DNA of 64,000 nt. Origin: Lytechinus pictus. Lineage: Eukaryota. The notes under the pieces are model-generated. The model was not told the origin of the DNA. It worked only from the letters and a program-made list of their open reading frames with translations, and did not search any database. This document shows, one piece after another, positions 60,286-64,000 of this stretch; position 1 is the first letter of the stretch; each line of letters opens with the position of its first letter. Both the position numbers and the translations under genes were made by a program. Location of the stretch: positions 31,868,001-31,932,000 of the forward strand of contig NC_087245.1 of assembly GCF_037042905.1 (NCBI RefSeq). Direction: 5' to 3'.

Positions 60286-62458
60286 ATAAGGATTAGTTCA
60301 TCCTGCTAATACTACAGCAGGATTAATTTATCTTTATTTCAAAGCTACATGAGGATAAATTTATCTTAATTTCAAAGCTACACGAGGATAAATTTATCTT
60401 AATTTCAAAGCTACGCGAGGATAAATTTATCCTAATTTCAAGGCTACACGAGGATAAATTTATCCTAATTTCAAGGCTACACGAGGATAAATTTATCCTA
60501 ATTTCAATGCTACATGAGGATAAATTTATCTTAATTTCAAAGCTACATGAGGATAAATTTATCTTAATTTCAAAGCTTCATGAGGATAAATTTATCCTAA
60601 TTTCAAGGCTACACGAGGATAAATTTATCTTAATTTCAAGGATACACGAGGATAAATTTATCTTAATTTCAAGGCTTCATGAGGATAAATTCATCCTAAT
60701 TTCAAGAATACATGAGGATAAATTTATCTTAATTTCAAAGCTACATGAGGATAAATTTATCTTAATTTCAAAGCTACACGAGGATAAATTTATCCTAATT
60801 TCAAGACTACACGAGGATAAATTTATCCTAATTTCAAGGCTATACGAGGATAAATTTATCCTAATTTCAATGCTACATGAGGATAAATTTATCTTAATTT
60901 CAAAGCTACATGAGGATAAATTTATCTTAATTTCAAAGCTTCACGAGGATAAATTTATCCTAATTTCAAGGCTACACGAGGATAAATTTATCTTAATTTC
61001 AAGGATACACGAGGATAAATTTATCTTAATTTCAAGGCTTCATGAGGATAAATTCATCCTAATTTCAAGAATACACGAGGATAAATTTATCCTAATTTCA
61101 AATCTACATGAGGATAAATTTATCTTAATTTCAAAGCTACACGAGGATAAATTTATCCTAATTTCAAAGCTACAAGAGGATAAATTTATCCTAATTTCAA
61201 GGCTACATGAGGATAAATTTATCCTAATTTCAAAGCTACACGAGGATAAATTTATCTTAATTTCAAAGCTACATGAGGATAAATTTATCTTAATTTCAAA
61301 GCTTCACGAGGATAAATTTATCCTAATTTCAAAGCTACACGAGGATAAATTTATCTTAATTTCAAGGATACACGAGGATAAATTTATCTTAATTTCAAGG
61401 ATACACGAGGATAAATTTATCTTAATTTCAAGAATACACGAGGATAAATTTATCCTAATTTCAAAGCTACATGAGGATAAATTTATCTTCGTTTCAAAGC
61501 TACATGAGGATAAATTTATCTTAATTTCAAAGCTTCACGAGGATAAATTTATCCTAATTTCAAGGCTACGCGAGGATAAATTTATCTTAATTTCAAAGCT
61601 ACACGAGGATAAATTTATCTTAATTTCAAGGCTACATGAGGATAAATTTATCCTAATTTCAAGGCTACACAAGGATAAATTTATCCTAATTTCAAGGCTA
61701 CACGAGGATAAATTTATCTTAATTTCAGTCTACATGAGGATAAATTTATCCTAACTTCAAGGCTACATGAGGATAAATTTATCTTAATTTCAAAGCTACA
61801 TGAGGATAAATTTATCTTAATTTCAAAGCTACACGAGGATAAATTTATCCTAATTTCAAGGCTACATGAGGATAAATTTATCCTAATTTCAAAGCTACAC
61901 GAGGATAAATTTATCTTAATTTCAGTCTACATGAGGATAAATTTATCTTAATTTCAAAGCTACATGAGGATAAATTTATCTTAATTTCAAAGCTACACGA
62001 GGATAAATTTATCCTAATTTCAAGGCTACATGAGGATAAATTTATCCTAATTTCAAAGCTACACGAGGATAAATTTATCTTAATTTCAAGACTACATGAG
62101 GATAAATTTATCCTAACTTCAAGGCTACATGAGGATAAATTTATCCTAATTTCAAGGCTACATGAGGATAAATTTATCTTAATTTCAAAGCTACACGAGG
62201 ATAAATTTATCTTAATTTCAAAGCTACATGAGGATAAATTTATCTTAATTTCAAAGCTTCACGAGGATAAATTTATCCTAATTTCAAGGCTACACGAGGA
62301 TAAATTTATCTTAATTTCAAGGCTACACGAGGATAAATTTATCTTAATTTCAAGGATACACGAGGATAAATTTATCTTAATTTCAAGGCTACACGAGGAT
62401 AAATTTATCTTAATTTCAAAGCTACACAAGGATAAAATTACCTTAATTTGAAAGCCAC
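60286..62458. repeat. Tandem minisatellite, 33-bp unit, about 65 copies, each with a palindromic core
   Basis: Unit GAGGATAAATTTATCYTAATTTCAARGCTACAY; the core AGGATAAATTTATCCT is a perfect 16-bp palindrome in the C variant; degenerate units at both edges. Confidence 0.98.
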
Positions 62459-62575
62459 AGCAATGACACAATTCACCTTAGAATAATTTAACACTTGGTA
62501 ATTTCATTGGGTGGCAAATGACATTTATCAATAAATTTGCATCGGACTTGTAGACAAGAGTAAGTTTTTCATTAA

Positions 62576-63090
62576 AGGTCAAGTCCACCCCAGGAAAATG
62601 CTGACTTGAATCAATAGAGAAAAATCAAACTAGCATAGTGCTGAAAATGTCATCAAAATCGGATGTAAAATAAGAAAGCTATGACATTTAAAGTTTCGCT
62701 TATTTTTCACAAATCAGTAGTATACAATATTTTTTATTTTTTTATAGATTTGACAATAAGGACCAACTTGACTGAACCATGGAGTATTAAACAGTGCTAA
62801 TTCCACATGTTCAGGGAGGAATTAATCGTTGTACCACTTGACAATGAGAAGAAAATTAGAATATTTCATATAATAAAATACAAAAGAAATAGTGAGTGGA
62901 TGACGTCACTGTCTCCTCATTTGCATACCCGCCAGGATGTGCATATAACTATTTTGTGAAATTAAGCTCAACTTTAAAATGTCATAACTTTTTTATTTTA
63001 CATCCAATTTTGATGAAATTTTCAGTGTTATGCTTGTTGGATTTTTCTCGTTTTATTCAAATCAACTTTTTGTAGGAATTAACTTGTCCT
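62576..63090. mobile_element. Kolobok-like non-autonomous DNA transposon, TTAA TSD
   Basis: TTAA-AGGTCAAGT...ACTTGTCCT-TTAA with ~115-bp imperfect subterminal inverted arms (catcaaaatcggatgtaaaataa / ttattttacatccaattttgatg). Confidence 0.85.
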
Positions 63091-63200
63091 TTAACTTGTG
63101 GCCTGTGGTGCATGTTAAAAAAAATTATGTAAACAACATGTATGTAACTATGTACCCGGGTTAACAAATTTGTTAAATAATCTGTGACAGCTCTCCTGTC

Positions 63201-63369
63201 CTGGGCGTTGTGGCTTGCGCCTGTAATCCAAGCTGTGGGGAAGTTACAAATTGATGCAGAGGTTCGAGCCCTAGTCACGTCTTTCAGATTGTGATGTTAA
63301 AGGTCGGTCCCAGACGTAAATAATCATATCTGCTTGATACACGTCTGACAAAACTCAAATACACACACA
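63201..63369 (+). mobile_element. SINE-like retroposon with 7SL/Alu-like head, box B, Deu-domain-like body, 3' stem-loop and (CA)n tail; 9-bp TSD
   Basis: TCTCCTGTC on both sides (63192-63200, 63370-63378); head GGGCGTTGTGGCTTGCGCCTGTAATCCAAGC; GGTTCGAGCCC at 63261; GTCTTTCAGATTGTGATGTTAAAGGTCGGTCCC; stem CAGACGT/ACGTCTG (63311-63317/63341-63347). Confidence 0.75.
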
Positions 63370-64000
63370 TCTCCTGTCTTCCAGAGACTTCTCACTGTCC
63401 TTCCCAATTCAGTTGTGGTACTTCTGAGTTCTGTAATGACATTTAAGAAGAAAAAAAATATTTTAACTCTATACAGCAATTAGTTTTTGTGTCAAATTTT
63501 GAAATGCAAAGGTTTTTCATATTGTAATATGAATGATTTGTACTGATAGTAATCAATTTTATTTACATCACATTCACTGTTAACCTTAAGATGGGCTAGC
63601 TTTTGTGGCTACTCCATGGCCAGATGGTTGTATACATGTACCCAACCCTTGCCCCCCCCCCCCCCAAAAAAAAAAAAAAAAAAAAACCTGCAGCTGAACG
63701 AGCACAAAATTTCAACAATGGTAATGTGAGATGTATTCTGCAAAGCGATTTTGCTTACTTTTCTAAACTAAGACAAGGCATAACATAAGTGATTTTGTGT
63801 CTCGCCCACTTATGAAAATAACCAGAAATATCATGATTTGCAAGGGCACGCAATATATATAATTATTATTATAATAATTATTTATAATCACGTATCAAAT
63901 TTTAGTATTTGTTAGATAATAATTTGTATCTATAAATTGTTCTTCAAAACGGCATTTTGTAACATCACTAATCGCAGGTACGTACTGTAACAAAGCGGTT

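Follow-up and report, generated by a model that had tools for sequence, protein, structure and literature searches.

The present analysis of a 64,000-nucleotide stretch of Lytechinus pictus DNA (the window) points, with a probability of roughly 0.88, to a young short interspersed element (SINE) with a hybrid head, in which nucleotides 1–45 of the animal's own 7SL RNA precede the rear portion of an older SINE, which appears to have supplied the box B (of the tRNA type), the core (probably a Deu/Nin one), the 3′ stem-loop and the terminal (CA)n. The 7SL-headed family amounts to about 1,400–1,800 copies in the 812-Mb genome. An earlier note, made from the letters of the window, had proposed a 7SL-headed SINE fused to a Deu-like core in an invertebrate genome. 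The fusion is supported by the match to the species' own 7SL RNA, by the SRP covariance model and by SINEs that combine this body with a head of another kind. That the host is an invertebrate is shown by the bindin encoded by the genome (Pfam PF02084, 237 bits), an echinoid marker.

The copy in the window is a 169-bp unit at positions 63201–63369, flanked on both sides by the identical 9-bp repeat TCTCCTGTC, as read directly from the letters (Table 1). The direct repeats that the earlier note had described around this unit are indeed exact, and the box B, core, stem-loop and (CA)n that it had placed after the head are all located, at 63261–63369. There is a single occurrence of the head motif in the window, against none in 100 shuffles. 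The hairpin of the tail folds far better than shuffled sequence (z = −4.9), with 0 of 200 shuffles equaling it, and this stem-loop is presumed to be the recognition element for the reverse transcriptase of a partner LINE. With respect to the family consensus, which begins one base earlier with ACTGGGCG, the window copy is without the initial A; it has GTGGCTTGC where the consensus has GTGGCGTGC in the helix 3 loop, and in the core, for which the family consensus is GTCTTTCGGATGGTGACGTTAAAGGTCGGTCCC, CAGATTGTGATG replaces CGGATGGTGACG. The changes in the helix 3 loop and in the core are private to the relatives of the host repeat in which the copy resides.

Table 1. Features of the SINE copy and of its surroundings, in window positions.
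Feature	Positions	Strand	Remarks
Left target-site duplication TCTCCTGTC	63192–63200	+	flank recurs at at least 12 paralogous loci
GC-rich 7SL-derived head, consensus positions 2–45	63201–63244	+	RF00017 model positions 2–43, 18.7 bits, E = 0.0033
Head contents: helix 2, helix 3 and its loop, UGUAAU turn, helix 4	UGUAAU turn 63222–63227	+	
A-box equivalent GGCGTTGTGG	63204–63213	+	inside the 7SL-derived head
Linker, tRNA-type box B and acceptor-like GTCAC	63245–63278	+	alignment with contigs L126, L131 and L120
Box B GGTTCGAGCCC	63261–63271	+	homology to non-7SL-headed SINEs starts here
Conserved core, putative Deu/Nin-like domain, beginning GTCTTTC	63279–63311	+	identical in L126, L131 and L120
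3′ stem-loop, 7-bp outer arms and inner hairpin	63311–63347	+	fold z = −4.9
Stem arms CAGACGT / ACGTCTG	63311–63317 / 63341–63347	+	
Tail ACAAAACTCAAATA, then (CA)4	63348–63369; (CA)4 63362–63369	+	
Right target-site duplication TCTCCTGTC	63370–63378	+	direct reading
Host repeat of more than 3 kb carrying the SINE copy	61701–64000	.	at least 12 loci, 90–97% identical
33-bp satellite, 44 units, 92% match	61000–62449		partly inside the host repeat
Abundant repeat of about 375 bp	62721–63094		3,956 first-look candidates, 91–93% identical; within the host repeat

The 9-bp duplication and the flanks of the window copy recur at 12 or more loci, from which it follows that one insertion took place in the ancestor of the host repeat and was then copied along. 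The window copy is a passenger in a larger repeat, not an independent insertion, and has no special importance of its own. Within the same region, the 33-bp satellite is the cause of the matches to the Rfam models mir-1302 and mir-282 in the window, which are spurious. The repeat of about 375 bp may be a MITE, because inverted arms of about 142 nt lie at roughly 62572–62713 and 62953–63094. Just downstream of the host repeat, at 63655–63687, there are 13 C followed by 23 A.

The genome contains seven full-length 7SL genes, recognized by the Rfam Metazoa_SRP model with 272–283 bits. They begin with ACCGGGCGTTGTGGCGTGCGCCTGTAATCCAGCT, with the exception of L037 (contig 12), which begins with ACTGGG. 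The SINE consensus begins with ACTGGGCGTTGTGGCGTGCGCCTGTAATCCAAGCT, its first base corresponding to position 1 of the 7SL model. The alignment of the head to the species' own 7SL, proposed in advance as a check, bears out the 7SL assignment: the consensus is identical to L037 at 30 of 30 nucleotides from +1, and over SINE nucleotides 1–45 the two agree in 41 of 46 alignment columns (about 89%). The SINE and L037 also have in common a U3:A43 pair in helix 2, where the other six 7SL genes have C3:G43, which reads as a compensatory difference specific to the L037 paralog.

The covariance model leads to the same assignment. For a consensus-like copy, the local match to RF00017 covers model positions 1–44 with 32.5 bits (E = 3.8e-7) and spans helices 2, 3 (loop included) and 4 as well as the UGUAAU turn. 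The window copy gives 18.7 bits (E = 0.0033), a match that is absent from a 2-kb cmscan at E ≤ 10 and appeared only in a narrower search. The SRP covariance-model check suggested beforehand thus comes out positive for both copies, and the Alu-derived Rfam model mir-1268 matches the SINE head as well. A head that resembled a tRNA more closely would have spoken against the original proposal; in the SINE, however, ARAGORN finds no tRNA and there is no match to the Rfam tRNA model RF00005 at E ≤ 10. The 5′ end derives from the 7SL 5′ end, as in SINE1 elements, and of the tRNA-related 5′ region of SINE2 elements there is only a tRNA-type box B with an acceptor-like remnant.

As judged from sequence comparison, what the SINE has of the SRP Alu domain is its 5′ half alone, about 45 nt. 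SINE1 elements are characterized by retention of the 7SL 3′-terminal region, and hence of a complete Alu domain, and by A and B boxes that both come from 7SL. Here, the RF00017 match ends at position 44, and box B belongs to the part that is homologous to non-7SL-headed SINEs. A search for the 7SL 3′ end in SINE nucleotides 45–100 gives a local alignment no better than those of shuffles (p = 0.5). An alignment of the SINE beyond nucleotide 45 with the S domain (p = 0.014 under mononucleotide shuffling) is taken as chance, because the same segment is common to SINEs whose heads are not 7SL-like. The SRP Alu-domain layout that had been read from the window therefore holds for the 5′ half, i.e., helices 2–4 and the UGUAAU turn, while the 3′ half is missing. 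SINEBase asks for at least 60% identity to tRNA, 5S rRNA or 7SL over at least 60 nt (PMC3531059); the 7SL overlap of 45–46 nt falls short of this length, though its identity is about 89% (41 of 46 columns). Despite the short overlap, we consider the 7SL origin unambiguous on the evidence of the alignments.

In the predicted fold of the head there are two hairpins, the ones that the 5′ end of genuine 7SL also forms. Neither the fold of the head (z = 0.9) nor that of the whole element (z = 0.1) is better than those of shuffled sequences, so that the 5′-domain structure is taken solely from the covariance-model homology. Departures from 7SL in the head region include a one-base insertion, CCAAGCT in the SINE vs CCAGCT in all seven 7SL genes, and a helix-4 loop that, in the youngest subfamily, is without one of the two C residues that form the SRP loop–loop pairs.

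Searches of the whole genome, allowing up to two mismatches, give 1,418 matches for the head motif, 1,803 for the core motif and 1,443 for the tail motif, and the reversed control of each motif gives 0. A search with the SINE itself yields more than 1,622 first-look candidates, the 46 scored among them having 81–100% identity. The worry expressed in the earlier note that the element might exist as a single copy is thereby removed, the family being multi-copy with common ends and different flanks. SINEBase defines a SINE as a short (<1 kb) interspersed repeat with at least 100 copies (PMC3531059), a description that covers the present family, with its consensus of 167 nt plus (CA)n, built from 55 copies, and its 1,418–1,803 interspersed matches.

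A positional sample of 30 copies along the first contig was chosen only by the exact core, and the 7SL head is present in 26 of these. Of the remaining four, three are preceded by unrelated sequence or by a partial SINE, and the fourth, L052, has the head behind a MITE-like insert. Divergence from the consensus, measured on 25 near-full-length copies of the positional sample with the selected core excluded, is 1.6% on average (range 0–4.2%), which indicates that the family is young. Independent copies have unrelated flanks and (CA)n of variable length, and 5′ truncations occur at many positions. Target-site duplications of at least 8 nt are found in 9 of 55 copies, vs 2.8% of shuffled flank pairings; they are short or absent in many copies.

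Two variants of the element were also observed. Dimers and head-to-tail arrays of up to six units are present at L024 (contig 18: 3952126–3953140), on contig 2 (17634180–17634605) and at L039, which suggests tandem amplification into a small satellite. A subfamily represented by seven loci with different flanks, L052 and L073–L078, has its core separated from box B by an additional segment of about 165 nt. This insert has terminal inverted repeats, is MITE-like and occurs alone as an abundant repeat in the genome. These seven loci were considered as an older subfamily, a view that was rejected: once the 165-nt insert, the source of their low identity, is set aside, what remains of the SINE agrees with the young consensus.

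The body of the SINE is also found behind other heads. A degenerate core word retrieves 28 loci from metagenome contigs, three of which (L126, L131 and L120) carry the same body from box B through core and stem-loop to the tail, with about 95% identity to the 7SL-headed SINE. Their heads differ, being unrelated to 7SL and showing A-box and B-box motifs of the tRNA type. Neither ARAGORN nor the Rfam tRNA model gives a significant tRNA match for these heads, and a tRNA derivation is suggested by the motifs and by the literature. The presence of the same body, at about 95% identity, behind non-7SL heads points to a head swap. L126 ends in (CA)n and L131 in (CAAC)n. The flank of L126 contains an interspersed repeat that is also present in the L. 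pictus genome with 86–91% identity, so that L126 probably stems from another echinoid; L131 has only the SINE body in common with the L. pictus genome. A genome search did not find the L126-type head in L. pictus. The three contigs are labeled as marine or environmental metagenome and have animal SINE copies inside, probably of echinoderm origin; the animal SINEs show that eukaryotic DNA is present in those metagenome assemblies.

The core is probably of the Deu/Nin type; it is conserved across SINEs with different heads, and a sea-urchin DeuSINE, SINE2-3_SP, is on record with a tRNA head and the partner CR1Y_SP (PMC3747384). A text search with words from the core returned nothing relevant. 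Among 20 sites that appeared to have the tail only, there is no partner LINE with the SINE tail, all 20 being SINE copies with mismatched heads or 5′ truncations. L052, with its differing upstream sequence, was considered as a partner LINE and rejected: it has no ORF of at least 120 aa in the 8 kb upstream and is a SINE copy with the MITE-like insert. Among sequencing runs, the window and the SINE body are found at shares of 0.29 or less, and no run with them is on record as RNA.

The surroundings of the 7SL genes show two further features. A conserved T-arm-like hairpin, in which the B-box motif GGTTCGAGTC is followed by GGTGTC, lies 10–40 nt after the T-run of six of the seven genes (L031–L036, contigs 10 and 1). 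The flanks around it are otherwise diverged, and L037 is without it. The hairpin may be a downstream TFIIIC site, and its B box, located after six 7SL genes, fits the idea of a promoter composed of a 7SL A-box equivalent and a tRNA-type B box. On contig 10, L031, L035 and L036 form a 7SL cluster at about 7.91–7.92 Mb. A diverged 7SL-headed SINE (81–89% identical) is located 38 nt upstream of each of the three, on the same strand, and breaks up the upstream region that 7SL genes otherwise conserve; SINE and 7SL gene have evidently been duplicated in tandem as one unit on this contig.

The simplest reading is a head swap in which 7SL nucleotides 1–45 would have replaced the front half of the head of a tRNA-type SINE and left the B box in place, by way of either DNA recombination or template switching, a route that has also been proposed for SINE1-1_EBu of the hagfish (PMC7245038). 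Pol III transcription would then rely on two elements, an A-box-like segment from 7SL and, some 55–65 nt downstream, the B box of tRNA type. A LINE of the stringent type, probably of the CR1 clade, would copy the SINE RNA through the stem-loop/(CA)n tail, and, by analogy with Alu, SRP9/14 may be bound by the 7SL 5′ domain, which would take the RNA to ribosomes. The window copy arose by a single insertion into the larger repeat, followed by passive multiplication with that repeat.

We have also considered alternative origins of the head. It could be a degenerate head of a tRNA-derived SINE whose likeness to 7SL and Alu is due to convergence on an A-box-like sequence for Pol III, as the canonical tRNA-type box B behind it, a body common to SINEs with tRNA-type motifs and a weak match to the tRNA-like mascRNA (12.7 bits, E = 6) might suggest. 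However, the identity to L. pictus 7SL RNA at 30 of 30 nucleotides, counted from the start of transcription, the paralog-specific compensatory pair, the E value of 3.8e-7 with the SRP model and the failure of both ARAGORN and Rfam to detect a tRNA make such convergence extremely improbable, and the 7SL identity together with the SRP model match effectively refutes a tRNA-derived head. It is also very unlikely that, instead of a single SINE lineage with a fixed 7SL module, we are dealing with 7SL retropseudogenes that have been truncated or with the outcome of repeated gene conversion by 7SL genes. The junction after nucleotide 45, the CCAAGCT insertion, the body and the tail are common to all sampled copies, and the SINE is without the S domain and without the 7SL 3′ end, both of which are expected in retropseudogenes. 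These findings outweigh the identity that the head still has to a living 7SL gene, the location of a SINE copy 38 nt upstream of three 7SL genes and the precedent of 7SL retrocopy expansions in marsupials and guinea pig (PMC7245038).

With the hybrid head as the preferred reading, a more demanding proposal is that the 45-nt 5′ domain and the tRNA-type B box suffice for both Pol III transcription and SRP9/14 recruitment, so that, in a sea-urchin lineage, the new head could have ousted the ancestral one, of tRNA type, from a tail-specific SINE of the CR1 type. We put this forward tentatively and consider it rather doubtful; if true, it would be the fourth independent, and the first invertebrate, invention of riding on SRP and would define a minimal Alu-like module. 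The competing view, that the 7SL head is a promoter donor or a passenger and that mobilization proceeds via the LINE-type stem-loop/(CA)n tail alone, without SRP9/14, is a serious one, to which we give somewhat less than even odds. It is favored by the relatives with non-7SL heads, whose identical type of body and tail implies that the body can spread without 7SL, by the strongly structured tail hairpin, by the missing 3′ half of the Alu domain and by the helix-4 loop of the youngest subfamily, with its missing loop–loop-pairing C. On the other hand, the UGUAAU turn and helices 2–4 are intact, and the 5′ domain of the SRP Alu portion alone binds SRP9/14, as established by structural work. In addition, 26 of the 30 core-bearing copies sampled in this genome are 7SL-headed and none of the L126-type heads is found in it, which would fit an advantage of the 7SL head. 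A different kind of objection, concerning novelty only, is that the family is real but already catalogued, as a sea-urchin SINE2 (tRNA) or DeuSINE entry of Repbase or Dfam, such as a relative of SINE2-3_SP, in which the 7SL derivation of the head may have been either recorded or missed. We regard this as unlikely, though far from negligible, given that sea-urchin SINE libraries have existed since 2005, that reviews list the sea-urchin DeuSINE SINE2-3_SP with a CR1 partner and that automated Dfam libraries span many assemblies. Against it stand the statements of SINE specialists in 2020 and 2024, who know 7SL-derived SINEs only from supraprimates, hagfish and shrew mole, the full-text literature on 7SL, sea urchin or echinoderm and SINE, in which no such report was found, and the description of SINE2-3_SP as tRNA-headed, which fits an L126-type relative better than the 7SL-headed family.

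The origin of a SINE from 7SL RNA is regarded as extremely rare, and specialists in 2024 counted three 7SL-derived lineages, all of them vertebrate (supraprimates, one shrew mole and hagfish). In the searchable full-text literature, 7SL-derived SINEs were not found to be described for echinoderms or for other invertebrates. Within that literature, the present element would be the first Alu-like, 7SL-headed SINE outside vertebrates.

Among the known systems, SINE1-1_EBu of the hagfish (Ebu1-1; Kojima 2020, PMC7245038) likewise combines a 7SL head with a body and a tail that were already present in a SINE of tRNA type, hagfish SINE1 having arisen as a chimera of 7SL RNA and a tRNA-derived SINE (PMC7245038). 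It is likewise young, with 2,363 copies in the hagfish vs about 1,400–1,800 here; it depends on a non-L1 LINE that recognizes a specific 3′ tail with a terminal microsatellite, a dependence that we infer for the sea-urchin element, and in both cases the duplications are of variable length. In contrast to the sea-urchin SINE, which has only 7SL nucleotides 1–45 and takes its box B from the tRNA-type part, SINE1-1_EBu has a complete Alu domain, made up of about 96 nt from the 5′ region of 7SL, with a 7SL-derived box B among them, and about 44 nt from the 3′ end. Its tail is RTE-derived with (AAC)n, whereas that of the sea-urchin SINE consists of the stem-loop and (CA)n and its partner is probably CR1-like, and its host is a vertebrate rather than an invertebrate.

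Alu, B1 and Tu of supraprimates and Urop of the shrew mole also start at 7SL +1 and have helices 2–4 and the UGUAAU turn. Unlike the sea-urchin SINE, which is without the 7SL 3′ end, they keep both 7SL ends after a central deletion of about 183 nt, and they have A-rich tails and use L1 with no specific 3′ recognition sequence; the tRNA-type box B, the conserved core and the specific tail set the sea-urchin SINE apart from them. SINE2-3_SP (Repbase; Nishihara 2006) shares with the present family, as far as its listing in two reviews goes (PMC4824008, PMC3747384), a sea-urchin host, a Deu/Nin-type domain and, with CR1Y_SP, a CR1 partner. It is reported as tRNA-headed, unlike the 7SL-headed family, the comparison being one of descriptions only. 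SINE2-3_SP is plausibly a tRNA-headed sister or ancestor of the 7SL-headed family and may be the L126-type element.

The sea-urchin lineage would extend 7SL-derived SINEs to invertebrates and would add a structurally minimal case, in which only the 5′ domain (helices 2–4 and the U-turn) comes from 7SL and the B box is borrowed from a tRNA-type SINE. The question of which part of the Alu domain is needed for the success of a SINE thereby becomes testable in a tractable animal; earlier work reportedly held that nothing less than the entire folded Alu domain would do. It also becomes testable whether SRP9/14 helps SINEs whose LINE, instead of poly(A), recognizes a 3′ tail of specific sequence. 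Since this body exists behind other heads and the 7SL-headed form is dominant in this genome, a natural head-swap comparison is at hand.
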